From Octopus sinensis (taxonomy: Eukaryota): a DNA stretch of 64,000 bases. Positions 7,696-62,575 of the stretch are shown piece after piece. A program made the translations under genes and the position numbers. Numbering within the stretch: the stretch's first letter is position 1; every line of letters starts with the position of its first letter. The notes beneath the pieces are model-generated. The model was not told the origin of the DNA. It saw nothing but the letters and a program-made list of their open reading frames with translations, and made no database searches. The stretch covers positions 170,314,001 through 170,378,000 of the forward strand of contig NC_042997.1 in NCBI RefSeq assembly GCF_006345805.1, read 5' to 3'.

Positions 7696-8282
7696 ATGAT
7701 ACATGTACACACACACACACACACTCACTCACAAAATCAACTGGTGTGTGTGTGTGTGTAAAACAACCTCTGTGTGTTTGTGTGCATATGTATACACATG
7801 CATACATTAACTTCAGTTTTATATATATGTACACACACACACACACATCCGAAAGACATATCGTGTTGAGCCTTAGTTTTGATTGCATTTGACTGTCTTA
7901 TCAGTCATTCTCTTCCAGTAGTTTTTACTGGGAGTTTGGGGGCATGGGTAGTGTAAGTACTGCAGTAGCTGCTCTTAGCACTTGTAGGATTGGCATTCAC
8001 TGCAAAATGCATTAAATCAATGCTTGATATAAAGATGAACAATGCAGTTATGTTGGTGTAATGTGCAGTTAGCTGACTCACACTAGCATGAAACAACCTT
8101 TTGATATTGTACCCAGTGCATCAACCCTGAATAGCACTGCACAGCACTTAGTCTCTTTATAATTGATGTGTTCCCATGTTAATTCTCTTTTGTTTTTCCA
8201 CCTCCTCTTTTTGTTGGGTTAATAAATTTAATTTTTTGTCTTGTAACTAAATCTTTCTGTCTGTTTATCGCCGTCACTTTCT

Positions 8283-8880
8283 TAACCCGTCTCCTCCTCA
8301 CTCTCTCAACCCGTCTCCTCCTCACTCTCTCAACCCCTCTCTCACTCACTCTCTCAACTCCTCTCTCCCTCACTCTCTCAACCCGTCTCCTCCTCACTCT
8401 CTCAACCCCTCTCTCACTCACTCTCTCAATCCCTCTCTCCCCTCACTCTCTCAACCCCTCTCTCACTCACTCTCTCAACTCCTCTCTCCCTCACTCTCTC
8501 AACTCCTCTCTCCCTCACTCTCTCAACTCCTCTCTCACTCACTCTCTCAACTCCTCTCTCACTCACTCTCTCAACCGTCTCCCCCTCACTCTCTCACTCC
8601 TCTCTCACTCACTCTCTGAACACCTCTCTCCCTCACTTTCTCAACCCATCTCTCCCTCACTTTCTCAACCCGTCTCTCCCTCACTCTCTCAACCCCTCTC
8701 TCACTCACTCTCTCAACCCCTCTCTCACTCACTCTCTCAACCCCTCTCTCCCTCACTCTCTCAGCTCCTCTCCCCCTCACTCTCTCCTTCACACTCTCAA
8801 CCCCTCTCTCCCTCACAATCTCAACCCCTCTCTCCCTCACACTCTCAACCTGTCTCTCCCTCACTCTCTCTCCTCTCTGC
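8283..8880. repeat. CT-rich minisatellite (~24-27-bp unit CTCTCTCAACCCCTCTCTCACTCA)
   Basis: More than 20 imperfect tandem units, with a near-pure pyrimidine + strand. Confidence 0.95.
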
Positions 8881-9515
8881 TTGTCTTTCACTTTTGAATT
8901 TTTTAATTGCAAAGGATCATCAATGTAGTCTTAATTATCATTAATGTTGCTAATTTGAATGATTATGTTTTCCAGCAAACAAAATATGTTATAATAAAAA
9001 CAAAATGTCATGAATAAATATTGGTATTGATTAATTGATTGGTTTAATCAGTTAGGAAAATTCATTCTCATTCTTGACTTTCAGTTATTACCTAATGTTT
9101 CACTTTCCCTAATCACACATAATTAGCATTGAAAGTCATTAAAACTCATTGTCAATTATAAAACATCCTTGCTGCTTCTAGTAGTAAACTGTACTCTCCA
9201 TGATTCTATTTAGGTGTGTGTAATTAATCAGTGAGATAAGATTATAATTTTTCAAATAATTAACCTCTCCCTTAACCCTCTCAGAACTGGGCCCCTCTGT
9301 GTAACTTTACCGTCCACTTGGACTCCTGAGCAAAAAAATAGTTTCATATACAGCTCAAGAGTAACAATTAGTTTAATGAACAGAATCAACTGCATGTTCT
9401 TTTTCTACCTGTTGTTTATTTGTATTATATAAATAAATGACAGTCATTGTCTTGCACTTCTTAAGTAAAGCTGTCCTTAACTTAGCTTTCGTGAAAGAAA
9501 TTAGGGAGAATTAGT

Positions 9516-10017: not shown

Positions 10018-11870
10018 CTCAAAGTAACTTAAGTCTACCAGAATCTTTCAAACTGGTCTCAAATTTCTCATCAAACTTAGGAATCCACAATTGTAATGTA
10101 TTATAGTTTTTTTTTTATAGTAAAACAAATAGTATTGTTAATGCCTGGGTGACCATGAAGATACTCTTATGTCATATCTTGACCATTACTTGATACTCTC
10201 TTAGCCTAAACCTATATAAAAATGCCAACAACCAATTTGTTTAACTAATTCAGTGGTATTCTTTTTTTCTAACCTCTGTGTTTTCTGAAAAACTAAAATG
10301 CTGTCAAATATAACAGATTTCGAAATGGCAAACAAATAGCACTGTACTTTGAATTACTCTGTTGAATGTCAACAGTGATGGAAAAAATCTTGAGTAGGCC
10401 ACACTAGATTTTAAGTAGATTAAATTTTTGGGCTGGCCTGCTTGCTCTCTTTTGTTTTTGCATAGATTTAATTTTTTTCTTTCCTTTTTAGTTTTGGTGT
10501 AACTGCTGTGAAATGTCATTGCTCTATTTAAAGTCTGACATCAACTATTGGAATAATTATTCTTACCATTTCTTGCTTTTTATCTTTTAGTTCAAACTTA
10601 TTATTTTTCTGTGGATTTCTCCAAATCTAAGTTTTTTGGTCTTATGAGATTTTTATATAACTGATTTAAATTTGAAAATATTCGTTGCAAGATTTAGTAA
10701 TTTTTCTTGTGATTGAAACATATCTAAAAATGAAATCTTCTCTACCTTCAAAATAAGTCATCAGAGAAATGAAGAGATCACACGAATCACTGCTTAGCTC
10801 CAATGTTGTTGTCTTGAGGGAGCCCCCCCCCCTCAAAAAAAAACCTCATTTTATTGTAAATATTTCCAGAAATTCTGCAACTTATTCCTATTGAACTGAG
10901 TTGTTTAAAATAAAGTGTTGTATCCCAAGAGAGGAAAGGTAATACATACAGAAGATTAGAACTTGAGACTATATCTTACTGTCTAGTACCTCATCTGTTT
11001 AACCTTGGTTCTTTAGCCCTCCTATCCTTTTACCATACAACATTTAGTTGAAATATTTTTCTGATTATTTCTTAACTTTAAAAGTGGTTTCACTATTTCT
11101 TCAAAGTGATCTTGCCAATGCCAACTTTACCTTCCATCCTTCCATGGATTCTAGTTTATTGCAGTTGAAGCTTGATATTTATTCTTCAGGTAGGCAATTT
11201 GAAATAAGAATTGTTTTGTATGGCAATTAAACTTCAAGGAATTTGTTAGATACTTAACATTTCTATGAAAGATGTTGTAATGGGATAGTTATATGAAAAA
11301 AAATCTATTTTTAATCGTTAGTCTTTTTTTATGGTTTTAAATTAATAATTTATTTGTATTATTTAAAGAATGCCCTGTTGCTCTTGCTCTGTCATGTTCT
11401 ACTTCTTTTCTCAACTCTTGCTCTCTTTCAATCTGCCTTAATTCAGTCGGGTTGTTTATTTTAATGTGTTAGTCTTTTAGTAACTTTTATCCAGCAGTAA
11501 AACACATAATTTGAAAATAAATTGACAAGTTCTTGTGTTACCAATTTTACAAAATTAATATTTCAGTTAAATCCTGTCAGTTATTGCTCTTACAGAAACT
11601 TATTGTCCTTAAGTGTTTAATAAACTGAAGATTTTAAACTCATTTCGTGTAGTTTTTCATCAAGACACAAACTCTTAAAATATATATGCATTCATTCTGA
11701 AATACATTTTTAAATAACTTATTTACATAATAATTTACATCACTTTATGATTACAAAACAAATCCTACATCAAAAATATAAAAGTAAAGAATAAAGACTT
11801 ATTTATGCATCATTTCAATAACATCAAGAACAATAATTCTTTATCTAATTTTGTTATTCTTTCTTTCCAG

Positions 11871-12064
11871 GCAAAGAAATATTTGTTGGTGTTGGGCAGA
11901 ACACAAATGAAGCTGGAGCAATAGCAGTGGCTCGCCTTTATGAAGATTATTCTGTTATCTCAATAACTCTAACTAGTAAACTGCATCTAAAGAATATGAT
12001 TTCAATGGCTGGGACAGGAGTTATTGTCATTGGTAACAGTACTGAATCAAAACACCTGTATCAG
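11871..12064 (+). CDS. DDAH: DDAH-family (dimethylargininase) internal exon
   Basis: TTCTTTCCAG acceptor and GTAGGA donor, 194 nt, phase 1 to 0. (G)KEIFVGVGQNTNEAGAIAVARLYEDYSVISITLTSKLHLKNMISMAGTGVIVIGNSTESKHLYQ aligns with DDAH1 GREFFVGLSKRTNQRGA...LHLKSFCSMAGP. Catalytic His retained. Confidence 0.92.
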
Positions 12065-12392
12065 GTAGGAGGATATAATATCAGAATTTTTGTTCAATTT
12101 TAGAAGTGATTTAGTAGATATGATTTTAATATATTTTAATATAAATTACCTTCAAGGAAATGTAACTGCTCTCCTGAAGATTTATGGCCTTGTGCTAATG
12201 TTGGAAACCATTGGGTGCAAGCATGGCTATGCAGTTTAAAAGTTTGCTCTACAACTATGTTGTTCTACATTGAATTCCATTGCATGACATCTTGAGCAAG
12301 AGTCTTCTACTATGGAACTTAGGCTAATCATTGAGTGAAATTTGGGAGACAGAAACTGTGCAGAAGCTTGTCATGCATGTGTGTATTTTCCT

Positions 12393-15940: not shown

Positions 15941-16733
15941 ATATTTTACTATAAAATTGGATTTAACCCTAAATCTGATTTTTCCCTGTAATTTTGGATT
16001 CATTCCCTAATATTTATTATTATATATATATATATATATATATATATCACAATCAAGGAACGGCCATAATAGGCCATTCACCCACTAGAAATAACAGCCA
16101 AAGCTTCAACCGCAAAATAGCATCAATTCCGTAAACCAGGAGAAAATTAAAAAACATTTACCCTGTAATTTCTTATACGATGCACCGTTTCATCTACTGT
16201 TTAATGGTAAACTAGCCTGATTAAATTAAATCAAGCCAATCTTCCATAGGCCCTTAGAATCGTCAGTAAGAAATAGCCAAGTCGAACAGATATTTTCACG
16301 AGGCATTTCTGTCCCTGCCTCAGCAATATCTGACCTAAAATTTTCAAATCATCGCACTCGCGATGATTAACCTATATTGATTAATTATATATATATATAT
16401 ATATATATATTAGGTAGATAGATATAACATGTCATATAATAGATAGATTCCTTTTTCAAATTCAGAGGTATAAAAACCTGTTGCTTCAGTAATGTTGATG
16501 ACAGTCACCAACTGCTAAAATTTCTCAACATTAAGTACATTCTGAATTTTTCTTTTTCATATCTACATTCCATTTCACATTGATTTCATGTTGTACATTT
16601 TTTAAAATGCAACCGGATAAAACCTACAAAAAAAAGTTACATTTTTATTACTTAGTGTTTGTTTATTTTTCTATCGTAATCATATATGTCATACCCTATA
16701 AGTAAAATGTTCTTCTTCTACTTGGACTTGTAG

Positions 16734-16865
16734 CAAATTAAAGATCTCACCTCTAACACATACTACAAATTAGACTTGGACAGTGATATACCGGCCAATG
16801 TGTTGTTTGCAAATGGTGCAATGATCCATCGTAGCCGAGACGAAATGGGAACCACCAACTGCAGT
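16734..16865 (+). CDS. DDAH: DDAH-family internal exon
   Basis: CTTGTAG acceptor and GTAAAT donor, 132 nt, phase 0 to 0. QIKDLTSNTYYKLDLDSDIPANVLFANGAMIHRSRDEMGTTNCS aligns with DDAH1 [26 protein letters not shown]...LLHRTPEEY. Confidence 0.88.
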
Positions 16866-17123
16866 GTAAATATCACTTTTATTTTCACATTTATAGTTCT
16901 CCATAATTTTGTGCATAAATAAATATATGTCCGTCAATTGCAAGTGGAAAGGGATGAGTTAGATGTTTTTCACTAAAATGGATGAAAGCGCTAATATATG
17001 ATATATGATGTATAAAAACATGTAATATACAAATAAATATCTGTAAATATAAAACCATCCGAATTTCTGAGTACCTCATTTCTTCTAATATAAAATACCT
17101 GTACATCATCTCCAAACCTTCTA

Positions 17124-18116: not shown

Positions 18117-18545
18117 AATTATTGTATACAGTGCTCAGGTGCACCACAACTTGTCAGAGTATATGCAGTAATGTACAAATGTCTGGAAAGCGAACAATGC
18201 ATGAGTCAGATACATGCTTGAGTGTGTATGGAGGGGAGAAAATCAGGTGTAGTGTTGGCGAATCTCAGAAAGCATGGAAGTTTTGAAGGATGCAGTGCTC
18301 CGACAACTAACAACTGATGCCGGCAGTTTGTTCCATGCTTCAGCAACTCTCAGCGTGGAAAAATGTTTTCTAAAGTGCTGTTTTCTGACTTTGTAAATAT
18401 GTCCACGGGTGTTAGATGGGTGGAGTTTGAAAAGGTGCTCAGAGTTATTGTTTGTATGATGGTTGATAATTTTATGGGTGTCTGCCAAGTCAGCTGCCAG
18501 ACATCGGAGTTTCAATGTGTCCATGCCCAGTGACTGCATTGTAGA
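18088..18545 (-). mobile_element. CR1/L2-clade LINE 3' fragment
   Basis: ORF end LKLRCL..DL..THKII...NTRGH..KV...LRVAEAWNKLP, followed by a 3' UTR and an (AAT)n tail. Confidence 0.85.
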
Positions 18546-19264
18546 CCTGCATGCAAGTGGATAATTATATTTGTAAGTATTCTATGATCTGAATAGGTAT
18601 AATGAGGTTGTGTAGCAAATAAAATCAAAATGACATACAACTGAAAAACAGAAAAAATCATTTTTGAGAATGTTTTACCCTGATCAACATCAATGAAAGA
18701 AATAATGTTGGAGAAATTACAATTACAGATCTTGGCTTTTGGTTAGATACAAGAGCAGATGTTCTATTTTTTTTTAAGGAAAATTGGATTTAGAGAAATG
18801 AGTTTATTACTAGTATTTTATTTTTTTTAACTTGTTAGAAATAAATGAATTTGGGATGTTTGTACATATTTTCTCTCATGGAGCACATCAGTGGTCTGAG
18901 AAGGGAGACAACCACCAGTTACAATGTTAGACCCCACCCATTTTGATTGTATTTTAGTCAAACACTCCTGATGTATTTAAAATTGTTTAACACCAAGAAA
19001 GATCTTATCGTGAAGTTGCTGTACTCGATGTGCTATTGACATTTAAGGAATTTGGATCCTTCATATGCAAAAGATTCAAGTTGGTAGGAGCTGTATATAT
19101 TGTATATATTGACTTAAAAGCCATTTTTTGATATTTTATATATATTTATATAAAGTTGAATAAATAATATTATTTTATAAGTAAATGTTTTGGTCAGTGT
19201 AGTGGTTATTATTTATATGCATTCTTAGAAACTTGAATAATTTTCATTAATTTTTTTATTTCAG

Positions 19265-19462
19265 ATCTTAGATGAGAAGATTGGGTATGAGCGGGACGAG
19301 GTAGAACTGCGAGAATTTGACAAGCTAAACCGTACCTTAAGTAGCCTGTGCCTGTTTATCAACAGGACCAAGACTACCCGACAGATCATGTCGGATATCA
19401 ATGATGAAGATATCAACAGCTATTCTACGTTGACCAGAAAAGGCAAGGATTATTACAAATAG
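19265..19462 (+). CDS. DDAH: DDAH-family terminal coding exon (catalytic Cys position is Ser)
   Basis: TTTCAG acceptor, 66 codons ending TAG at 19460-19462. ILDEKIGYERDEVELREFDKLNRTLSSLCLFINRTKTTRQ...KDYYK aligns with DDAH1 [21 protein letters not shown] and DDAH2 ELEKAGAGLSSLCLVL. Confidence 0.88.
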   Translation: MLDEKIGYERDEVELREFDKLNRTLSSLCLFINRTKTTRQIMSDINDEDINSYSTLTRKGKDYYK

Positions 19463-21374: not shown

Positions 21375-21818
21375 ATACATTGAAACTCTGACGTCTGGCA
21401 GCTGACTTGGCAGACACCCATAAAATTATTAACCATCTTACTAACAATAGCTAGGAGCACCTTCTCAAACTCTACCTGTCTAACACCCATGGACATATTT
21501 ACAAAGTCAGAAAACAGCACAGCTCCCATGACTTTCAGAAACATTTTTTCACTCAAAGAGTTGCTGAAGTATGGAACAAACTGCCGGCATCAGTTGTTAG
21601 TTGTCGGAGCACTGCATCCTTCAAAACTTCCATGTTTCCTGAGATTTGCCAACACTACACCAGATTTTCTCCCCTCCATGCACACGCAAGTATGTATTTG
21701 ACTCATACACTGTTCACTTTCCAGACATTTGTACATTACTGCATATGCTTTATATGCACTTTTGACAAGTTGTGGTGCACCTGAGCACTGTATCCAGTAA
21801 TTTCATTATTATTATTAT
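21375..21818 (+). mobile_element. CR1/L2-clade LINE 3' fragment
   Basis: Same family in the opposite orientation to the 20748 copy; ends TTTCATTATTATTATT. Confidence 0.85.
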
Positions 21819-28335: not shown

Positions 28336-29164
28336 TCTTCTGAGAGAAGGACCGTTGAAGTTTCTTCATCTGAAAACAGCTCCCACTTATTTACTTTAAC
28401 CATAGAAGAGCAATTTAGGGCGAAATTCTGTTTTAAGCACCACATATAACCCCTCATAACTTTATTTTTTGTAATTTTTCAGAAATTGTTTTGCAAATTT
28501 GTGTTCTACACGCGAGAGTTCATACGATTAAGCCAAAAAAAAAAAAAAAAAAAGAAATAGCTTACAAACTACAGAATGTTCTCAAGAAAGCCAAGAGAAA
28601 AAGATGTTTTATTTTACACATTTTACCAGGATACGAAGAGTTTAAAAGTGTTTAGTTACAAAGAAATTATTTTAGAAATCTGCCGGTCAAAGTGAAAAGA
28701 TCCAAAAAAAGTGTGATTTAGGGGTGATTTAGCTGTTTTAGCATATCTCACAACCACCTTATACCTTCTTCGTTTCTGTGTCACTGTGACATGTATTGAT
28801 ATCTTTCAATATTTTTCTTCCCGTAAACGCATTTAATGGAATGATGATGTACCCAAGGACAGTCCATTGCTAGGATTTAAGCAAAAAATTCGGACCGTCC
28901 ATATTTTAAACTCTGATTAAAAGAAAAAAATTGAAAAGGAGTGAAACTTTTAGGATTTAAGGATGGGAGGGATTAACAATGAATTCTTTTCATCATCGTA
29001 TGAATTCTCGTGCATAGAACACAAATTCGCAAAATTTTTCTGAAAATTCCTCAAAATAAAACAGTAGGAGGGGTTGTGGAGTGATTAAACCAGATTTCTG
29101 TCCAAATTAGATATGTTAACACCAGTCCTGCAAATTTTATTGAAAGTATAACGATTATTTTAAA

Positions 29165-29575
29165 GGACATGACATGGCAGACACCCATAAAATTATCAAC
29201 CATCGTACAAACAGTGGCTTTGGGCGCCTTTTCAGGCTCCACCCATCAAACACCCGTGGACATATTTACAAAGTAAGAAAACAGCACAGATCCCATGACT
29301 TCAGGAAACATTTTTTCACGCTGAGAGTTGCTGGGGCGTGGAGCAAATTGCCGGCGTCAGTTGTTAGTTGTCAGAGCACTGCATCCTTCAAAACTTCCGT
29401 GCTTCCTGGGATTCGCCAACGCTGCACTTGATTTTCTCCCCTCCGTGCACACGCGGGCATGTGTCTGACTCGTGCATTGTTCGCTTTCCAGACATTTCTA
29501 CATTGCTGCATGTACTTTGTATGCACTTTCTGATGAGTTGTGGTGCACCTGAGCACTGTATACAATTAATTTCAT
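29165..29575 (+). mobile_element. CR1/L2-clade LINE 3' fragment
   Basis: ADTHKIINH...NTRGHIYKVRK...FFTLRVAGAWSKLP, plus 3' UTR. Confidence 0.85.
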
Positions 29576-30129: not shown

Positions 30130-30652
30130 AATATGAACAGTGCAGAGTCTAGAGCAATGGTTCCCAACTAGGCACCTGCCATATTCTGAACGCCTTACTT
30201 CCCTGGGCATGGACACATTGAAACCCCGACGTCTGGCAGCTGACTTGGCAGACACCCATAAAATTATTAACCATCTTACAAACAATAACTCTGAGCACCT
30301 TTTCAAACTTCACCTGTCTAACACCCGTGGACATGTTTACAAAGTCAGAAAACAGCACAGCTCCCATGACTTTCGGAAACATTTTTTCACGCTAAGAGTT
30401 GCTGAAACATGGAACAAACTGCCGGCATCAGTTGTTAGTTGTCGGAGCACTGCATCCTTCAAAACTTCCATGCTACCTGAGATTCGCCAACACTACACCT
30501 GATTTTCTCCCCTCCATACACATGCAAGCATGTATCTGACTCATACACTGTTCACTTCCGAGACATTTGTACATTACTTCATATGTTTTATACGCACTTT
30601 TGACAAGTTGTGGTGCACCTGAGCACTGTATACAATAATTTCATTATTATTA
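30130..30652 (+). mobile_element. CR1/L2-clade LINE 3' fragment
   Basis: ORF 30140-30502 RHLPYSERLTSLGMDTL...AETWNKLPASVV, 3' UTR and ATT tail. Confidence 0.88.
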
Positions 30653-31815: not shown

Positions 31816-33062
31816 TTACTACAAATACTGCAAACCGCTAAACATAGTGAGAAGGAAACTCAGTTTGAAGTAAATCCATAGAGCAAGTTCTTGCCGTGGC
31901 CGAGAGATATACATAACAGTTCAGAGAAATACCATTCTAAGATTCAGAGTTCAATCCCTACAAAAGGTGGCATTTCAAAACAGCTGAAGGATACCTAGGA
32001 GTCATGATGTAGGTAGGCCTCAGCTTCTTAGAGCGTAAAGAACTAACGGACTGAAGCATTTGCTTGACGGGTAGTTCTTCCTCTGAAGATTTTTCCTGTT
32101 GTCTGCTCGACTTATACAGTGAGTTTTCATCTATTATGAGCTATTTTGTTTATCATTCGATGCAGTAAGATGTGAGGGAGATAACTTCGCACTTAGCTTT
32201 ACAGCGCATGTGCTGTTTATGTTAGTTTGCCATAGTAGTGTGTGTCTGTTGTCAAGGAAGCCAACGATGAAGGTTCGTTGCTGAGTTTGAAACTTTTATA
32301 TTTTGATTCACTTTAAAATATTACTTTTCGATTCCTTGTCTCATCCCAATTTTTTTCTGGCATCAATTTAGAGAATACAGTTATTTCATTATTTCAGTAG
32401 ACTTTGTTTTGGTTTGGTTATTGATATATATATATAATATTTTAAATCGTGATGATAATAATAAATAGTAATTTACCTGTTGCTCTTTCAAAACAGACGC
32501 AATGAAACTGAACTGCTACAAATGTCTTTTATAATCTTTTGTGCATACTTATTGTAGTCTAATTTCTTAAACTCTCTCGTTTCTTCCCTCTCTTTATACA
32601 AAATGAAAATGTAATTAAACACGAGGATCGTATGTATGTATGTGTGCGTGTGTAAAAGGGATTAATAAATCCAGTCAGATATCTAGAAAGCACTCAGTGT
32701 TAAACGAACTTGGTTAACTATATCAAATAATCGGACACCAAAAAATTCAAATAGAATTAATATCCAAAGTAATTCCTCGTGTATGACAAATAAACCCAAA
32801 TAACGTTCTGAAGAATTTGAAGACATCTAGAGTAATTTGACAACAAGAATAGAGAAAATCACATCATTAATTGATGATTATTCCATATATTACCGACGAT
32901 CATTTCTACTGCGCCAGCATATTTAGAAGTAGAAAATACCAGTCAAATCAATATATCTGAAGATTTATGCTAACACAATGTTATCAAAGTAACCCCACAC
33001 GAGTAAAATTCAAAGTGAACTGAGATAATATGTCCAATACGTGAAGGCATACAAAAATAACG

Positions 33063-33139
<77 letters not shown>

Positions 33140-33659
33140 TTTTATTATATAGAAGGAGCTTCTATATATATATAAAGAAATACTGAAAAACCACACTGAA
33201 ACCTAGATATACACAAGCACGCTAATAGAATGAAAGAATTAAGATGAAAAAACTACTGCAATTAAAAAAGTTGGTCTCACTATCACCTGTATTTAATACT
33301 CAATGTAGGTAATAGTCAACTTATGAACGTACACTTAAATGCATACACTCACTCAATGCACACATACACAAGCTGTATTATGCTCATACATATTTCCAAT
33401 ATATTCCGTATTTGCCCTCCTATACTACTGGACATAACTCTTTCTCCCTTTCTTGAAATCCATTATTCTCTTAACATTTCTATCTTGACTATTCATCACT
33501 CATGATCTCTCTTAGAAATTATCCTTCTGTATTACTAACCACCACTTCTGTTCCCTCAGGTCACCGATTATTGACATCTATCATGCTATCTAGCTGTCAA
33601 CTATTTCTACAACAATTCTATTATTCTCTCTCTCTTTCTCCAGCAAACATGTTGACCAT

Positions 33660-33915
33660 AGGCTATTACTGCCTTTTTGCCGGTGGCATGTAAAAAGCAC
33701 CAACCGATCGTGGCCGTTGCCAGCCTCGCTTGGCACGTAAAAAGCATCCACTACACTCACAGAGTGGTTGGCGTTAGGAAGGACATCCAGCTGTAGAAAC
33801 ACTGCCAGATCAGACTGGAGCCTAGTGCAGCCTCCTGGCTTCCCGGACCCCAGTCAAACCGTCCAACCCAAGCTAGCATGGAAAACGGACGTTAAACAAT
33901 GATGATGATGATGAT
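33660..33915 (+). mobile_element. RTE-tail retroposon
   Basis: GGTTGGCGTTAGGAAGGACATCCAGCTGTAGAAAC...GGACGTTAAAC(GAT)n. Confidence 0.88.
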
Positions 33916-35914
33916 CTTGCTATAACTGTGCCTCTTTATCATTTCTAGTCCTCTCACCACCGCCATTTAGCCTTCTTCCATACAAGCATCCCAACTCTTT
34001 CTGTTTCCTTACTCTTTACTTTCTTTCTTCTTCTGCTATCATCTTCTCTTCTGTCCACTCTATTAGTTATGATGCTCTGAATAGACAGAGATAATGTTAT
34101 GTAGAGAGGATTCTATTGTTATACTGGTTGAAATGCAAATTCAGTAGTGCTGGTGCCATGAATGAATGCACCCAGAGCATTCTGTTAAATAGTTGGCGAA
34201 CAAGTAGAAACATTGTCTTGTCAAAGACATAACAATCTCTTATGTGTCAGTGCCACGATAAAATGCTTTCAATATTCTCTGTAAAGTGATTGGTGTTTGA
34301 AAGACTATAGAAACCTTGCTGCCAGAAATAAAGCACCAACAAGACTTAGTTCTTCAAATTGTCTAAGAACACAGTGACTCTGAATAAAAATAGACTTAAA
34401 CAGAAGACTGAGTAGTTTTCCTTGGTCAAGGTGAGTGTGTGTTAAGAGTTGTTTTCAGGGTATTGAACCTTGCAAAGGAGATGACGAATGCAACAAATGT
34501 GGAGTTGTGTTGGAAAGGACATATCCAACCCTTTCGAGCATGGAAAAGTGGATGGGGAAATGATGATATAGTTAAATACGCGATGATTCTATTTTTACTA
34601 CATAAGTTTACATATATTATATTATACCTTGATACAGTGTGAACTGAGATCTCTGCTGATATTAAAATAAAGTGTTAAGCAATTGTGGTATGCAAACTAG
34701 AAGCTCCAGTTCTTTGTAGCTTCTGTATTTGTTGAGTATATAAACAGACTGGATGCTTATTTCTCTGGGATTGGTCAAATGATACAGACACCTGATGAGA
34801 ACTTAATAAGGTTTGAAAATTGACTAAGGTTGTTCATAATTTTTTCAATCTATGGAGAAATAGTTAAATTTTCCATGTTTGTAGTTTTACTACATAGGTT
34901 TACACAACACACAACTATATATATATATATTATATATATATATATATGTGACTGATAGCCAGGTCTAATATAATGTAATAGGACTTGCAACTGAAAATTC
35001 AAGATATACAAACAGTAATATTTCTATTGTAGAGTATATAGTAAGCAAAAAACAAGGATATGTGGGAGGGAAAGTGTTTCGATATTTTCTGAGAGGTTAC
35101 AGCTGTTTCATAATCTACTCACATCCTTAACCTTGATGCAGAGAAATATTTCTATACATACATGTGTATATATACATATAAGCAATACATTCATACAATG
35201 ATGTACAGAAGAGAGAAGATGATTCTTTAAGCTGCATTATGGAGTAATCCATCTAGACTCATTCATTTATACATAATATAGCACGGATAAAATTGGCAAA
35301 AATTAGTAACCCAGATTATAATCAAAACAAGCCAAACAACTATTAACGTCAAGAGGAGACCTGCGTGGAGTAGGTAATGATGGCAGTGATAAACAAAATC
35401 AAGTGAATTTTAAAGGGAATGTATATGTCAACAGTCGGGGTAGGAGTAGTCCTGACAGATACTCAGATTACAAAAACTATAAGCACTAAAACATACATGC
35501 TTGAAAACCTACAAAATGCTCAGCTTACCAATGTGTACTGGCACTGACTGACAGGAGAACTATTACCTTGTTTGGAAACTGGTGAGTGTTGGCTACAGAA
35601 AGGGTATCTGGTTGTAGAAAATGTGCTTCATTGATTTACATCTGACCCATGACAACATGGTAAGTTGATGTTGAACCAATGATCATGCATTTTGAGGACA
35701 TTAGCATCAATGGTTAAAGGTTTTCAACAGGCCAATCATAGATGTGATATGAAGACTTGTTCGCTGAATTTCTAGTGATAAGGAATGTTTACAATTTGAG
35801 TGCTATAAATGCCACAAGTCATTTTTATTCTACTCACTGGTTTATATGCCTTCTTGCTGATGTGAATATTTTTCTCAATTACATATATACATATGATGGG
35901 TTTACACATAATTT

Positions 35915-40990: not shown

Positions 40991-41734
40991 TGATGTTCCC
41001 TGTGTTGCTCAGTTTTTATGAACAATGTTTCAGTATTGTTATTTGTGTACAATATGTACTGTCAGCTTTTGAACCGAGTCATGTTTAGGAATATTTTTTT
41101 GGGATTGTGTGCCAAATTATAATATATGAAGCTGTACTGATACTTTTTCCATGATTTTTTTACATCATACACATTGCATCAGTTATTATCTGTATCATTT
41201 TTACTCTTACACTCCAGATATGGCTTACTTCTGTTTTGAGGTCCTTGTATTTTGTAGCTTTCCAACTTAATTCCATTGGCTGAATAACCGTCTCCTTCCA
41301 GAAATACCCTAAGATTTAATGACTCATTTGTTTTTTTTTCTACTACCAAAACTTCCAGTCTTGTCACCATTTATTTATCATCTCTCTTTCAAACTGTATA
41401 CATACTCTACTACACAAATTCATGAAAGATCTGATTGTGATGCATCATATAATTTTTCTGTTAGCCCTAAAAAACTGCACTCAGATTTCTTGTTGGTTTC
41501 TGACTCTGTCTGTGATTCATTAGTGTATTAAGTTTGTCTATTGTACCAGTTCTTGCCTGATGCTTGTTTATCCAATTCTTATGAGAGTGTGTTGTTTGAG
41601 TCATACTATTAAAATGAAAACTCCTTTCTTAATATGAAGACTGTACCTAGGATTGCTATTTTTTGGGCTTTGCTGAGTTTGCACTCTGATACAGTTTTTA
41701 TGTTTTTGTTCATATATTTTTTTCAACATACTCT

Positions 41735-57894: not shown

Positions 57895-60800
57895 TCTTAC
57901 CCATCTCTCTCACTACGAAAATTTAACCTTTTAGGCTACTTTCAAGCCTTCGCCATAACTTGATTTATCTTTCCTATCTCTCTCTCTACGAAATTTAACC
58001 TTAGGCTACCTCAAGCCTTAATCCCATCTTTCCGCCATCGGCGGTCTTTCCTCCTCTTCTTCTTCTTATGCTAAAACTTGAAAATCGCCATTACCATTAC
58101 GATTCTACAATTTAAATTCCCAATTCAACTTACTTTCTTCTTCAATTTCAACTCCCGGTCGATGCCCACAGCAAGTTTTTAAAATTTATCTTACTATTTT
58201 TATTTTCCCATACATAGCGCGACATACATTCATTCGTTGTTACTACGTTTATTCATACATTGATAACTTGATTCGTCTTACCCATCTCTCTCACTACGAA
58301 AATTTAACCTTTTAAGCTACTTTCAAGCCTTCGCCATAACTTGATTATCTTTCCTATCTCTCTCTCTACGAAATTTAACCTTAGGCTACCTCAAGCCTTA
58401 ATCCCATCTTCCCCATCTTTCCGCCATCGGCGGTGCGCCCCCCCCCCCACCAATACCGATGAACACTGTTCTCACCCCCCCCCCAACACCAATACCGATG
58501 AACACTGTTCTCACCCCACCACCAATACCGGTGAACACTGTTCTCACCCCCACCACCAATACGGTGAACACTGTTCTCACCCCAACCACTACCAGTATAC
58601 CCTGTTCTCACCATCTACACCGGATACGCCCTTACTCCCTCCTCCTCCCCCCACTACCCCTTCTCCTCATATGCTTTCACTGTGAAAAGACAAGCTGCTA
58701 GCGCCATAGCTCATCAACTGCCCACCGATCTTACGCTTCCTCCTGACACTGCCTCAATCCGACCATCCCCTTTTAGTACCCTCCCGCCTCGTAATATCCT
58801 ACGTTTTTATTTCTTACGAACCTACACCAACCCTTCCTGCCATCGTTCCTCCTTACCCCAACCTTCCCCACTGGTTGCTCCCCTATATTACCCGCACCCT
58901 CTACTATCTCTCCCTCTCTTTCACTGGTGAAACCTTTCTCAACTGGACCCCCCCTCCCCAACTCAACTCTAGAATATCTGTATTTCTTTCCTCTACCTAA
59001 TTACGTTACTCAGTGACGATAACGAATGTCCACTGCTAACACCAGCTCCTGCCCACGGCGTGGTCAGGTTGGAAGAGAGATCAAAAGAAAAATACCACGA
59101 AAACTATCACCACCACAACAACCCTCCTCTTCTCAGGCGCCGAATCCCCCCCCGTCCCCCCCACATCTCCTTCCCAGTTTTCAGAGTTGGCACTATCAAT
59201 GTTGGTACATTGACAGGCAAGTCTAGTGAGATTGTAGAGATGCTAGAGAGAAGACAGGTTGATGTATGCTGCATACAAGAGGTAAGATGGAGAGATGCTT
59301 CGGCTAGGGTCCTCACGGGCAAGGCACTTAGGTACAAACTCTACTGGCAAGGTAACGCGGAAGGTGTAGGGGGTGTAGGCATTCTCCTTGCGGAGGAATG
59401 GGTGGATAAGGTCATAGTGGTTGTCAGGGTTTGTGATAGAGTGCTTAAGCTCAGGTTGGTCCTACAGAGTGGCACAGCTATGATTATCTCAGCCTATGCC
59501 CCACAAGCGGGACTACCAAATGATCAGAAGGACGACTTTTATGATACCCTTCTGCAGGCTACTTCAAAGACTAGTAACAAGGACCTCATCTTTGTAGGTG
59601 GAGATTTTAATGGGCATGTTGGGCGGGAATCGGGTATCTTCACTGGGGTACATGGTGGCTATGGTATTGGCACCAGAAATGATGAGGGAACTAGACTGCT
59701 GGAATTTCTGTGATGCATGTAACCTTTCAATCTGCAACACTAACTTCAAGAAGCCAGTCTGCCACCTTATAACTTATCAGTCAGGAGACTCCGCTAGCCA
59801 AATAGACTTCATCCTCACCAGACAACGGGATGCAGGGTTGCTCTTGAATACAAAGACCCTCCCGGGTGAAGAATGTATCCCTCAGCATAGACTAATCATC
59901 AGTGACTTTAAGCTCGAGGCCAGAAGGACTCCAAGAAACAAACCAATCCAGAAAAGAAGGATTTGGAGGCTAAAGAACCCTTCGCATGGTCAGAAATTTA
60001 GGGACATACTCGTCAAGAAATTTGATGAGAGGGAGGAGGAGCTTCAGACGTCAGACATAGAAGGTAGCTGGGAATTCCTACGGGACAGCTTGCTGAGTGC
60101 CACAGACCAAGTCTGTGGATGGTGCAAAGTCTCTTCCAGACCTAGAATTACGTGGTGGTGGAATAGAGCAGTAGATAAAGCCATCTGTGAAAAGAGACGG
60201 GCCTGGAAAGCCTGGAAGGATGGGGGCAGCAGGGAACTGTACCAGATAGCCAAAAGGGAGGCTGGGCGGCAGGTATACATTGCCAAAGATGTAGCAGAAA
60301 AGAAGAAGTTTGCCAATGTCCAGCGTCGCGAGGATCAAAGAGCTGAAGTATTTCGGATTGCCAGACAGTGTGTCAGAGAAAATAGCGATGTTATAGGAGA
60401 GAAATGTGTCCGCATGGATGATGGGGCACTTGCTTTTACTACTAGTGAAAAGAAAGAGGCTTGGAGAAGCCATTATGAAAGACTGCTGAATGAGGAGAAT
60501 GAATGGGAGGAGGAGAGCCTGCCAAATGTTGACCCAGTAGAGGGACCAGCTACCCGAATAGACAGCTCCCTTGTAGATAAGGCAATTAAGGATATGAAAC
60601 CAGGCAAAGCCCCTGGCCTATCAGGAATCACTGCTGAGATGCTTAAAACAGCTGGATATGTGGGCTATGCCATAGTCACCCGCATTGTAAACCAGGTAGT
60701 TCACAATGGAGTCATACCCAATGACTGGTGCAGCAGCACCATAGTCAACTGCTACAAGGGTAAAGGTGATGCTCTAGATAGAAATAACTACAGAGGTATC

Positions 60801-62575
60801 AAACTGTTGGACCAGGTGATGAAGGTCTTAGAGAAGGTCATAACCAATCTCATTAGGGAGAGAATTTGTTTAGATGAAATGCAGTTCGGTTTTGTACCAG
60901 GTAGAAGCACCACTGATGCTATATTCCTGGTCCGACAACTGCAGGAGAAGTACCTAGCTAAAGATAAACCCCTCTACATAGCTTTTGTAGACTTGGAGAA
61001 AGCCTTTGACAGGGTTCCCCGTTCCCTTATCTGGTGGTCGATGCGGAAACTGGAGATTGAAGAATGGCTAATAAGGGCTGTACAGGCTCTATACAGAGAG
61101 GCTGTCAGCAAGGTTAGGATTGGCAACGAATATAGTGAAGAATTCCGGGTAGAAGTAGGTGTGCACCAGGGCTCAGCCCTCAGTTCCCTTTTATTCATCA
61201 TAGTCCTTCAGGCAATAACAGAGGAATTCAAAACGGGATGCCCCTGGGAGCTCCTCTATGCCGATGACCTAGCTCTCATAGCAGAATCACTACCGGAACT
61301 AGAAGAGAAATTTTGGGTGTGGAAGCAAGGGTTGGAATCAAAGGGCCTTAGAATAAATGTAGCAAAGACCAAAGTATTAGTAAGCAGCAAGAGGTACTCA
61401 GCACACACCCCCTCGGGTAGGTGGCCCTGCTCAACCTGTAGGAAAGGTACAGGTAGAAACTCCATAAGATGCACCCAATGTAAGTTATGGACACATAAGA
61501 GGTGCAGCAACATTAAAGGGAAATTAACAGATAAGATAGCTTTCATGTGCGGCAGATGCACAGGGACAATAGACACAACAGACACTCAGAAAACAGATTC
61601 CATCACACTCCAGGGAGAGAAACTAGAAGTAGTTGATAGTTTCCGCTACCTGGGTGACCAAGTTAGTAGCGGAGGTGGATGCACAGAGAGTATCACCACT
61701 AGAATACGAATAGCCTGGGCAAAGTTCAGAAAGCTCCTACCCCTACTGGCAACAAAAGGTCTCTCCCTCAGAGCGAAAGGTAGATTGTATGATGCATGTG
61801 TGCGAACTGCCATGCTCCACGGTAATGAAACATGGGCTGTGACTGCAGAAGACATGCGTAGACTTGAAAGAAATGAAGCTAGCATGATCCGCTGGATGTG
61901 TAGTGTCAGTGTGCACGCAAGACAGAGTGTAAGCATCCTGAGAGAAATGCTGGATATAAGAAGCATCAGATGTGGTGTGCAAGAGCGACGCTTGCGATGG
62001 TATGGTCATGTGCTGCGGATGGATGAAGAGAGATGTGTGAAGAAGTGCCACTCCCAAACAGTTGAAGGTATCAGGGGGAGAGGTAGACCCAGGAAGACAT
62101 GGGATGAGGTAGTCAAGCATGACCTCAGAGCATTGGGCCTCACTGAGGCAATGGCGAAGGACCGAGATCTCTGGAGATATGCTGTGACTACAAAGACCCG
62201 GGCTGCTTTCTGCAGCAATTCCACTTACCCCCTACCCATTCTAAGTACCCCGGATCCCCAAAGTACCCTGGATCCCCAAAGTACCCGATCCCCAAAGTAC
62301 CCCGGACCTCGTTGCCCCCGTGCCGCTGACACGTTAAAAGCTCGAACCGATCGTGACCGATGCCGGACCCTCCGGCCCCTGTGCAGGTGGCACGTAAAAA
62401 GCACCCAATCCACTCACGGAGTGGTTGGCGTTAGGATGGGCATCCAGCCGTAGAAACTCTGCCAGATTCAGACTGGAGCCTGGAGCGGCCCCTGGCTTCC
62501 CAGACCCGGTCGAACCGTCCAACCCGTGCTAGCGCGGAAAGCGGACGTTAAACGATGATGATGATGATGATGATA
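57895..62575 (+). mobile_element. Near-full-length RTE-clade LINE in a WDR19 intron, sense orientation
   Basis: Repeat-structured 5' region, APE endonuclease, RT and a 3' UTR ending GGACGTTAAAC(GAT)n. The 5' boundary is uncertain and no TSD was identified. Confidence 0.9.
59026..62453 (+). pseudogene. RTE ORF: APE endonuclease + reverse transcriptase with inserted PHD finger; frameshifted
   Basis: APE motifs TINVGTL, CIQEVRW, SAYAPQ, GDFNGHVG, IDFIL. RT motifs NYRGIKL, QFGF, FVDLEKAFD, VHQGS, YADD (61257-61268). A +1 T at 59705-59707 breaks EF-CDAC, and the ATG at 59026 is out of frame with the APE domain. Confidence 0.9.

Follow-up and report, generated by a model that had tools for sequence, protein, structure and literature searches.

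Enzymes of the DDAH family normally destroy a natural inhibitor of nitric-oxide synthesis, and nitric-oxide signalling is prominent in the nervous system of cephalopods and in their ink and skin physiology. One member of the family, DDAH2, has been contested for two decades. In human DDAH1, Cys274, His173 and Asp127 form the catalytic triad, Asp73 binds the alpha-amino group, Asp79 and Asp269 clamp the guanidine, and Arg145 binds the carboxylate (PMC10958460). In human DDAH2, the nucleophile is replaced by Ser274 according to an AlphaFold model or by Leu275 according to SWISS-MODEL, Cys276 is not positioned for attack, and simulations place it too far from the substrate (PMC10256801). The same 2023 multi-laboratory consortium study found that human DDAH2 does not hydrolyse asymmetric dimethylarginine (ADMA), and a Cys-to-Ser mutant of Pseudomonas DDAH fails to catabolise it (PMC10256801). 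Here, we describe a DDAH-family gene of Octopus sinensis in which Ser occupies the position of the catalytic Cys and the 3' part of which lies on the + strand of an AT-rich window (G+C = 37%), i.e., the whole stretch of 64,000 nucleotides analysed (contig NC_042997.1, positions 170,314,001 to 170,378,000).

The reading that we favour, and consider reasonably probable, is that the gene belongs to a mollusc-wide, and probably lophotrochozoan-wide, lineage of the DDAH fold that lacks the nucleophile, has been kept by selection, would act as a non-hydrolytic binder, and came to share the motif LSSLCL with human DDAH2 by convergence.

The nucleophile position and the gene around it

The frame that opens at position 19265 (+), after the acceptor AG at 19263-19264, translates as ILDEKIGYERDEVELREFDKLNRTLSSLCLFINRTKTTRQIMSDINDEDINSYSTLTRKGKDYYK and ends with the stop codon at 19460-19462. 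Two upstream exons were located by tblastn with human DDAH1 as a ruler, followed by inspection of the splice sites. The annotated O. sinensis product, P0001 ('N(G),N(G)-dimethylarginine dimethylaminohydrolase 1 isoform X2'), corresponds in residues 50-223 to the three-exon product with 100% identity, and the splice sites of the three exons are canonical (AG/GT) and compatible in phase. The features are as follows.

11871..12064, + strand: coding exon 3 of 5, (G)KEIFVGVGQNTNEAGAIAVARLYEDYSVISITLTSKLHLKNMISMAGTGVIVIGNSTESKHLYQ, carrying LHLK, with acceptor AG at 11869-11870 (phase 1) and donor GT at 12065; from tblastn with DDAH1, P0001 and the Argonauta orthologue P0004
11900..11902, + strand: Asn (AAC) at the position of DDAH1 Arg145, the binder of the substrate carboxylate; from alignment tables
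11984..11986, + strand: His (CAT) in LHLK, the catalytic His173, kept; from alignments
16734..16865, + strand: coding exon 4 of 5, QIKDLTSNTYYKLDLDSDIPANVLFANGAMIHRSRDEMGTTNCS, with acceptor AG at 16732-16733 and donor GTAAAT at 16866 (phase 0); from tblastn and splice-site reading
19265..19462, + strand: terminal coding exon 5 of 5, stop codon included, 100% identical to P0001 residues 159-223
19328..19333, + strand: Asn-Arg (AAC CGT) at DDAH1 Asp269-Gly270, with the guanidine clamp Asp269 lost; from alignments
19343..19345, + strand: Ser (AGC) at the position of the nucleophile Cys274; from ungapped HMMER alignments
19349..19351, + strand: Cys (TGC) of LCL, aligned with DDAH1 Ser276, two residues past the nucleophile position; from ungapped HMMER alignments
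19364..19459, + strand: C-terminal tail of 32 residues, RTKTTRQIMSDINDEDINSYSTLTRKGKDYYK; from alignments

Both P0001, searched with phmmer, and a profile built from nine orthologues of cephalopods and bivalves align without gaps to human DDAH1 chains from SELEK to LIN. In this register, the consecutive residues Leu, Ser, Ser, Leu and Cys fall on Leu272, Thr273, Cys274, Cys275 and Ser276, respectively, and LFIN falls on VLIN; the top-scoring PDB chain is the engineered C274S variant 3p8p. The octopus protein does not carry a Cys at the position of human Cys274, and Ser274 is invariant in all of the cephalopod and bivalve orthologues aligned (9/9). The codon AGC at 19343-19345 differs from TGC by one base, and A-to-I RNA editing would yield Gly, not Cys. 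In arthropod relatives, the register is pinned by ELxK before the motif and by IL[IV]R[KR]xRH after it: the sequences of crab, ELEKANGSLTCCSILIRKTRHLKNIM, and shrimp, EMVKSGGNLSSCSILIRKSRHLKNIM, are equally long but not alike at the nucleophile, and the spacing from ELxK to RH in insect ELAKVSSGLSSCCLLVRRPRHIRSI equals the crab and shrimp length. The AlphaFold models of P0004 (predicted local distance difference test score, pLDDT, 94) and of the canonical Haliotis DDAH P0025 (pLDDT 95.4), compared as a register check on spacing and secondary structure and not as a superposition, both place eight residues between the invariant Glu and the conserved Leu. In P0004, the helix S-S262-L is followed by C264 and then by the last strand; in P0025, a short helical turn, L-T-C271-C, precedes a strand that starts at S273. 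The hypothesis with which the analysis started, that a two-residue loop insertion has shifted the actual nucleophile, the Cys of LCL, was rejected because the HMMER alignments are ungapped, the arthropod sequences are anchored on both sides, the spacing in the AlphaFold models is equal, and this Cys is not conserved in the orthologues. UniProt flags Cys276 of DDAH2 as the nucleophile 'by similarity'.

These results bear out the original prediction, made from the DNA sequence and correct in every particular of its reading of that sequence, that Ser takes the nucleophile position in an ungapped alignment (here by HMMER with human DDAH1 and by the AlphaFold register), that the catalytic His in LHLK is kept (codon 11984-11986, aligned to His173), and that the exon with the catalytic Asp lies outside the window; its statement that DDAH2 has been reported not to hydrolyse ADMA is confirmed by the consortium study (PMC10256801). 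It had also described LCL as identical to DDAH2, which holds for human and other mammalian sequences and fails as a DDAH2 signature, given LSSCSIL in shark, LSSCSLL in snake and LSSFCLL in catfish. Searches of the window by tblastn, for which seven canonical DDAHs were used, did not find an alternative terminal exon with the canonical TCC, which the prediction had named as grounds for abandoning the idea; a match to 'CCSVFMN' at 41003-41023 was dismissed as chance, as a stop codon lies a few residues upstream.

Residues 1-49 of P0001 have no match in the window by tblastn; they include LLDGGDVLFTG with the catalytic Asp127, a stretch that is intact in annotated P0001 as well as in the O. bimaculoides and Argonauta loci. 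P0001 begins with an alternative first exon, MVQNEESKEEICSVM, and is truncated, lacking the first ~92 residues of the fold, among them Asp73, Glu78, Asp79 and Arg98; it is the sole O. sinensis product retrieved, and a full-length isoform is absent among the protein matches. The orthologues in O. bimaculoides (locus L001) and Argonauta hians (locus L002) have five coding exons that extend over 80-86 kb, and, judging from their spacing, exon 2 of the O. sinensis gene would sit just upstream of window position 1. Searched alone against PDB and Pfam, the 65-residue peptide of the terminal exon gave nothing meaningful; since it is too short for matches, the evidence rests on the three-exon product and the full-length orthologues.

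The product belongs to the DDAH/pentein (amidinotransferase) fold. phmmer matches P0001 to DDAH1 in PDB with E = 1e-27, the orthologue profile reaches E = 8e-67, and Foldseek matches the AlphaFold model of P0004 to human DDAH1 (2jaj) with a TM-score of 0.92 and a root-mean-square deviation of 1.9 A; the Pfam ADI match is marginal (24.3 bits for P0004 and 21.4 bits for P0001, at a cut-off of 22.8). The tail, which follows L-[LF]-I-N with the motif K..R.I.S.I...D...Y, is conserved across the mollusc copies that lack Cys274 (K, S, D and Y invariant) and is absent from vertebrate, cnidarian and canonical gastropod DDAH; AlphaFold gives it a helix at 282-292 with lower confidence.

The gene is under purifying selection. 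The ratio of nonsynonymous to synonymous substitution rates (dN/dS), calculated by the Nei-Gojobori method over 173 codons, is 0.23 between O. sinensis and Argonauta (Fisher p = 5e-8) and 0.10 between O. bimaculoides and Argonauta; the value for the tail is 0.11. Open reading frames, splice sites, the five-exon structure and the motif are common to three octopod genomes, and transcript-derived copies exist (P0002 and P0003). In O. bimaculoides, exon 3, which bears the catalytic His, was not found in L001 between exon 2 (75282-75386) and exon 4 (92899-93030), where the locus has 7,828 N; owing to this assembly gap, the RefSeq/GenBank models P0007 and P0008 carry junk for exon 3, which is intact in the transcript-derived P0002 of the same species.

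Around Ser274, the active site is partly preserved. The cephalopod proteins keep His173, Asp127, Glu78, Asp79 and Arg98, and Asp73 is changed to Glu, Arg145 to Asn and Asp269-Gly270 to Asn-Arg; positions 73, 78, 79 and 98, encoded by exons outside the window, were read from the full-length orthologues P0004 and P0007. The catalytic pair of His173 and Asp127 is therefore present, and the substrate-binding set (Asp73, Glu78/Asp79, Arg98, Arg145, Asp269) is incomplete. Of the human DDAH1 and DDAH2 sequences that served as position rulers, the former agrees with the PDB alignments, and the latter matches residues 274-276 in the literature (PMC10256801) and clusters with database DDAH2 at 99%.

The coupling between these positions was counted in 366 collected DDAH-family sequences, the counts being of sequences and not of independent events. 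The sequences with Cys274 (n=214) have Arg145 in 99%, His173 in 100% and Asp269-Gly270 in 86%, with Ser at position 276 in 93% and Cys in 3%. The sequences with Ser274 (n=111) have Arg145 in 24%, His173 in 69%, Asp269-Gly270 in 4.5% and Cys at position 276 in 59%. The pattern is clear, and it suggests that the constraint on the remaining catalytic apparatus relaxes once Cys274 is lost, which is what loss of the canonical reaction predicts and which thus supports the reading that we favour.

Relatives and the repeated loss of Cys274

Relatives were sampled by an exhaustive HMMER search of cluster representatives, two more homologue searches and cluster look-ups, and a neighbour-joining tree was built from simple distances over 241 columns with 200 bootstraps, the catalytic columns being left out. 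Cephalopods, bivalves and the second gastropod copies form one clade (93%), vertebrate DDAH1 and DDAH2 form another (100%), and DDAH2 itself is recovered at 99% and joins an invertebrate in 0/200 replicates. The octopus gene, with Ser274 and the tail motif, falls within the mollusc clade and outside that of DDAH2, an outcome of the metazoan phylogeny with mollusc paralogues that the original prediction had put forward as a check. It belongs to the Cys-less mollusc lineage and not to the DDAH2 orthologue group, defined by clade membership and by Ser274 with Trp145 in the absence of a long tail; of these traits, it shares Ser274 alone. Extension of the mollusc clade to annelids, nemerteans and others has a weak bootstrap of 34.5%. 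Two transcript assemblies, P0005 and P0006, were taken as cephalopod, probably decapodiform, from their 100% grouping with Argonauta.

Orthologues with the long tail were found in the bivalves Mya, Dreissena, Mercenaria, Pinctada, Mytilus and Sinanodonta, and as a second gastropod copy in Haliotis, Babylonia, Littorina, Patella, Pomacea, Biomphalaria and Batillaria. Nearly all of them have Ser274, the exceptions being Littorina with Arg and Physella with Ala, and position 276 is Val in most bivalves and Ala, Leu, His or Val in most second-copy gastropods. A separate canonical, short-tailed gene is also found in Haliotis, Littorina and Babylonia, so canonical and Cys-less copies coexist within species. 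The canonical gastropod DDAHs (P0025, P0169, P0170, P0030, P0172, P0173 and P0174) form a clade of their own (94%) near cnidarian DDAH and apart from other lophotrochozoan sequences, with support for this placement of 27-40%; the clade could be an old paralogue surviving only in gastropods, or an artefact of the tree.

A second DDAH that retains the Cys, for which the original prediction had recommended looking, was not detected in cephalopods or bivalves among the best 120 of 385 protein matches to the canonical Haliotis DDAH, which are gastropod, arthropod, cnidarian and vertebrate proteins; this was a protein search, not a genome-wide one, and it retrieves only sequences that share exact words with the query. 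The absence of a Cys-bearing DDAH from cephalopods and bivalves is thereby suggested.

The Cys-less state extends beyond molluscs. It occurs in all of the cephalopod, bivalve and second-copy gastropod sequences recovered and also in annelids, nemerteans, a flatworm and a bryozoan, as well as in insects, mites, ticks, the shrimp Penaeus, a priapulid, a tardigrade and a hemichordate. Some nearest neighbours differ at position 274, i.e., Penaeus from Scylla and Homarus (100%) and Glandiceps from Ptychodera (100%), and the insects (bootstrap 95%) nest among Cys-bearing crustaceans. There is good support in these sequences for a change of Cys274 to Ser on at least five independent occasions, in DDAH2, insects, Penaeus, a hemichordate and lophotrochozoans, and Cys274 was probably lost independently in arachnids (compared with Limulus), Priapulus and a tardigrade as well.

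Cys276 accompanies Ser274 in separate lineages, namely mammalian and catfish DDAH2, insects, cephalopods, second-copy Haliotis, Sinanodonta, Sarcoptes, the tardigrade and the flatworm, and motifs resembling LSSLCL are found in Sarcoptes (LSSLCI) and second-copy Haliotis (ISSLCI). Since the change of Cys274 to Ser recurs, often with that of Ser276 to Cys, the identity of LSSLCL between octopus and human is best read as convergence on a narrow set of tolerated residues and not as common ancestry. The original prediction had left two origins open. A DDAH2-type lineage older than vertebrates is contradicted by the grouping of DDAH2 with vertebrate DDAH1; convergence holds, except that it is not confined to a mollusc, as had been proposed, but extends to other lophotrochozoans, arthropods, a hemichordate and further groups.

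Every insect sequence recovered has Ser274 together with Trp, Phe or Tyr145 and is annotated 'DDAH1' (e.g., P0314 from Tribolium, P0305 from Zootermopsis and P0355 from Monomorium); in Hymenoptera, Arg replaces His173. Mites and ticks likewise lack Cys274 though annotated 'DDAH1' (P0354 from Sarcoptes, P0375 from Dermacentor). The RefSeq label 'DDAH1' or 'DDAH1-like' is given to nucleophile-less genes across insects and molluscs, which is a warning for annotation. A literature search of incomplete coverage found no published account of a Cys-less invertebrate DDAH and nothing relevant on cephalopod or mollusc DDAH, on DDAH pseudoenzymes or on the fly gene CG1764.

Function and rival explanations

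The lineage presents a DDAH fold that lacks the thiol and two ligand-binding residues, in which half of the arginine pocket is left and a tail is added, and which selection has maintained over hundreds of millions of years. Hydrolysis of ADMA through a covalent thiol mechanism is improbable for the octopus protein, because human DDAH2, with the same Ser274/Leu275/Cys276, does not hydrolyse ADMA, because the Pseudomonas Cys-to-Ser mutant is inactive on ADMA, and because engineered Cys-to-Ser DDAHs have been deposited with bound ligand (1h70 from Pseudomonas with citrulline; 3p8p from human with an inhibitor). From the residues present, we infer the status of a pseudo-enzyme, and the function is most likely that of a non-hydrolytic, DDAH2-like binding protein. 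In the proposed mechanism, the nucleophilic Cys would have been lost long ago in the mollusc lineage, after which the protein was maintained by selection. A guanidino ligand or the arginine side chain of a protein may be held in the arginine pocket, half of which is preserved and in which Ser274 would form hydrogen bonds, and the C-terminal tail may supply an extra interaction surface; the role would be ligand sensing or protein interaction, with binding in place of catalysis.

Several points weigh against a non-hydrolytic binder. The trees are neighbour-joining trees on simple distances, not likelihood-based. Cephalopods keep His173, Asp127, Asp79, Glu78 and Arg98, which would be needless in a pure scaffold, and the recurrence of Cys276 in independent Ser274 lineages suggests that a thiol close to the pocket has been selected for, perhaps as a relocated nucleophile. 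With Argonauta as the outgroup, O. sinensis has 16 lineage-specific amino-acid changes and O. bimaculoides 4 (p = 0.012), and dN/dS between these two species is 0.59, a value from few substitutions that is indistinguishable from 1; constraint may be somewhat relaxed in O. sinensis.

The relocated nucleophile is the main rival, although we regard it as unlikely. According to this explanation, the Cys of LCL (276) replaces Cys274 and the protein is a thiol amidinohydrolase acting on ADMA or on another guanidino substrate, deeper or shifted in the pocket. The repeated gain of Cys276 is striking: it is present in 59% of Ser274 sequences and 3% of Cys274 sequences, in separate lineages, and purifying selection and the retention of His173 and Asp127 in cephalopods would suit a working enzyme. 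However, most bivalves have Val and most gastropods Ala, Leu, His or Val at position 276, with the tail and the remainder of the protein conserved. Such variability within the mollusc clade implies that the function of the clade does not depend on that thiol. Furthermore, Arg145 and Asp269 are lost, and human DDAH2, with Ser274/Leu275/Cys276, has no ADMA hydrolase activity, its Cys276 being too far away in simulations (PMC10256801).

It is highly improbable that Ser274, His173 and Asp127 form a working serine hydrolase triad that hydrolyses a guanidino group without a thiol. The invariance of Ser274 in the nine cephalopod and bivalve orthologues and its retention in most second-copy gastropods would fit such a triad, as would the facts that no other replacement approaches Ser in frequency in any independent loss and that cephalopods retain both His and Asp. 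However, the Pseudomonas Cys-to-Ser enzyme is inactive on ADMA (PMC10256801), and 1h70 and 3p8p were deposited with ligand still bound. Pinctada and Mytilus keep Ser274 with Gln or Arg at position 173, and Hymenoptera have Arg173, with which no triad is possible; the persistence of Ser274 where His173 has been lost argues against a Ser-His-Asp hydrolase.

Very little credence can be given to a common origin of vertebrate DDAH2 and the octopus gene in a single Cys-less paralogue older than the bilaterian divergence. Ser274 and the hexamer LSSLCL are common to human and octopus, and gastropods demonstrate that canonical and Cys-less copies can coexist. However, a tree built without the catalytic columns still unites DDAH2 with vertebrate DDAH1 in 100% of replicates and never with protostomes; shark and snake DDAH2 have LSSCS, and DDAH2 has Trp145 and no long tail, compared with Asn145 and the tail of the octopus protein. 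The close pairs that differ in state (Penaeus and Scylla/Homarus; Glandiceps and Ptychodera) indicate, in addition, that Cys274 changes readily.

The least credible explanation is that a pseudogene or a wrongly annotated terminal exon accounts for the Ser, for although the O. sinensis product is a truncated isoform X2, its lineage is accelerated and the O. bimaculoides RefSeq models are wrong, the frames are open, the splice sites are canonical, the same structure and motif are found in Argonauta and O. bimaculoides, dN/dS is 0.10-0.23, no alternative canonical terminal exon lies in the window, and the errors in the O. bimaculoides models are explained by the gap of 7,828 N.

A broader proposal is put forward tentatively. 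Ser274, often with Cys276, may represent not decay but a second functional state of the DDAH fold that has evolved recurrently, at least five times, and cephalopods, bivalves and insects may be without a thiol-dependent DDAH. If this is true, the function of human DDAH2 has natural replicates across animals, and cephalopods, bivalves and insects clear ADMA, and hence tune nitric-oxide synthesis, by another route. As the sole DDAH-family gene found in cephalopods is probably unable to degrade ADMA, the control of methylarginines there may differ from the vertebrate textbook scheme. Seen against its family, a single such gene is not remarkable; the broader interest lies in the recurrent pattern of Cys274-to-Ser and Ser276-to-Cys, and it is also worth attention that cephalopods, bivalves and insects may have no working DDAH. 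The change of Cys274 to Ser, with which Arg145 and Asp269 are usually lost as well, is fixed and conserved in many animal lineages, which offer independent replicates for the study of function.

Other features of the window and comparison with known systems

The downstream neighbour of the gene on the same strand, in O. bimaculoides (L001 103170-105968) and Argonauta (L002 97516-99949), encodes a WDR19/IFT-type WD40/TPR protein of ~1,340 residues. The beginning of this gene is matched by conserved blocks at about 32000-35250 (+) of the window, so gene order appears to be conserved in octopods. A retrotransposon of the long interspersed nuclear element (LINE) type occupies 58973-62450 (+), with an Exo_endo_phos match (E = 1e-9, 58973-59710) followed by a 951-residue frame with RVT_1 (E = 1e-28). 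Copies of a repeat with the translation ...ADLADTHKIINH...NTRGHIYKVRKQH...RVAEAWNKLPASVV lie at 18246-18581 (-), 21455-21781 (+), 29144-29428 (+) and 30137-30499 (+), one of them inside intron 4 of the DDAH gene; we take the ADLADTHKIINH-type repeat to resemble the 3' end of a retrotransposon, and no database match was obtained for it. A low-complexity tandem repeat at 8183-8941 (+), open in several frames (SLTLSTPLSLTLST... and HSLNPSLTHSLN...), lies in the intron before exon 3. A weak exon-like similarity in intron 4, at 19003-19104 (+), to the block DVLFTGKEFFVG of DDAH exons 2-3 (E = 0.59-4.7) is conserved in O. bimaculoides only with the whole intron and is absent in Argonauta; it was set aside as probably due to chance.

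Among described systems, DDAH1 and canonical DDAH (EC 3.5.3.18; 2jai/2jaj, and 1h70 from Pseudomonas) share with the octopus protein the fold, ~30% identity, the His, the Asp, Glu78/Asp79 and Arg98. The octopus protein differs from them in Ser274, Asn145, Asn269, Cys276 and a tail of ~30 residues. Trypanosoma brucei RESC5 (8dpk) is a precedent for a binding role, as it is a non-enzymatic component of a complex with the DDAH fold (Foldseek TM-score ~0.70); however, it has 16-18% identity and belongs to the RNA-editing machinery, and no evolutionary link to the mollusc genes is implied.

The insect and mite proteins annotated as 'DDAH1' resemble the octopus protein in Ser274 and Cys276 (GLSSCCLL and GLTSSCIL; TLSSLCIL in Sarcoptes) and in a basic C-terminal extension, and Arg145 is replaced in insects and Dermacentor and kept in Sarcoptes and other mites. 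They differ in that their losses are separate, since crustaceans and Limulus keep Cys274, in their short tail, RSRHIRNL, and, in insects, in Trp, Phe or Tyr145. The Cys-less copies of bivalves and gastropods (Mya arenaria, Pinctada, Haliotis, Babylonia) are orthologues (93%) with Ser274, the tail motif and an NG.LIHR block. However, most bivalve copies have Val276 and some also lack His173, and the gastropod copies keep Arg145 and stand beside a separate canonical, Cys-bearing DDAH.

Vertebrate DDAH2, listed by HGNC as 'DDAH family member 2, ADMA-independent', has the DDAH fold, Ser274, a replaced Arg145, and His173 and Asp127 kept, as does the octopus protein, and in mammals the local LSSLCL is identical. 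Positions 73 and 78 are presumably Leu and Gly in human DDAH2, and both are Glu in octopus. DDAH2 differs in Trp145, where the octopus protein has Asn145, in the absence of the long tail and in its place as sister to vertebrate DDAH1, which points to an independent origin of the same Ser.

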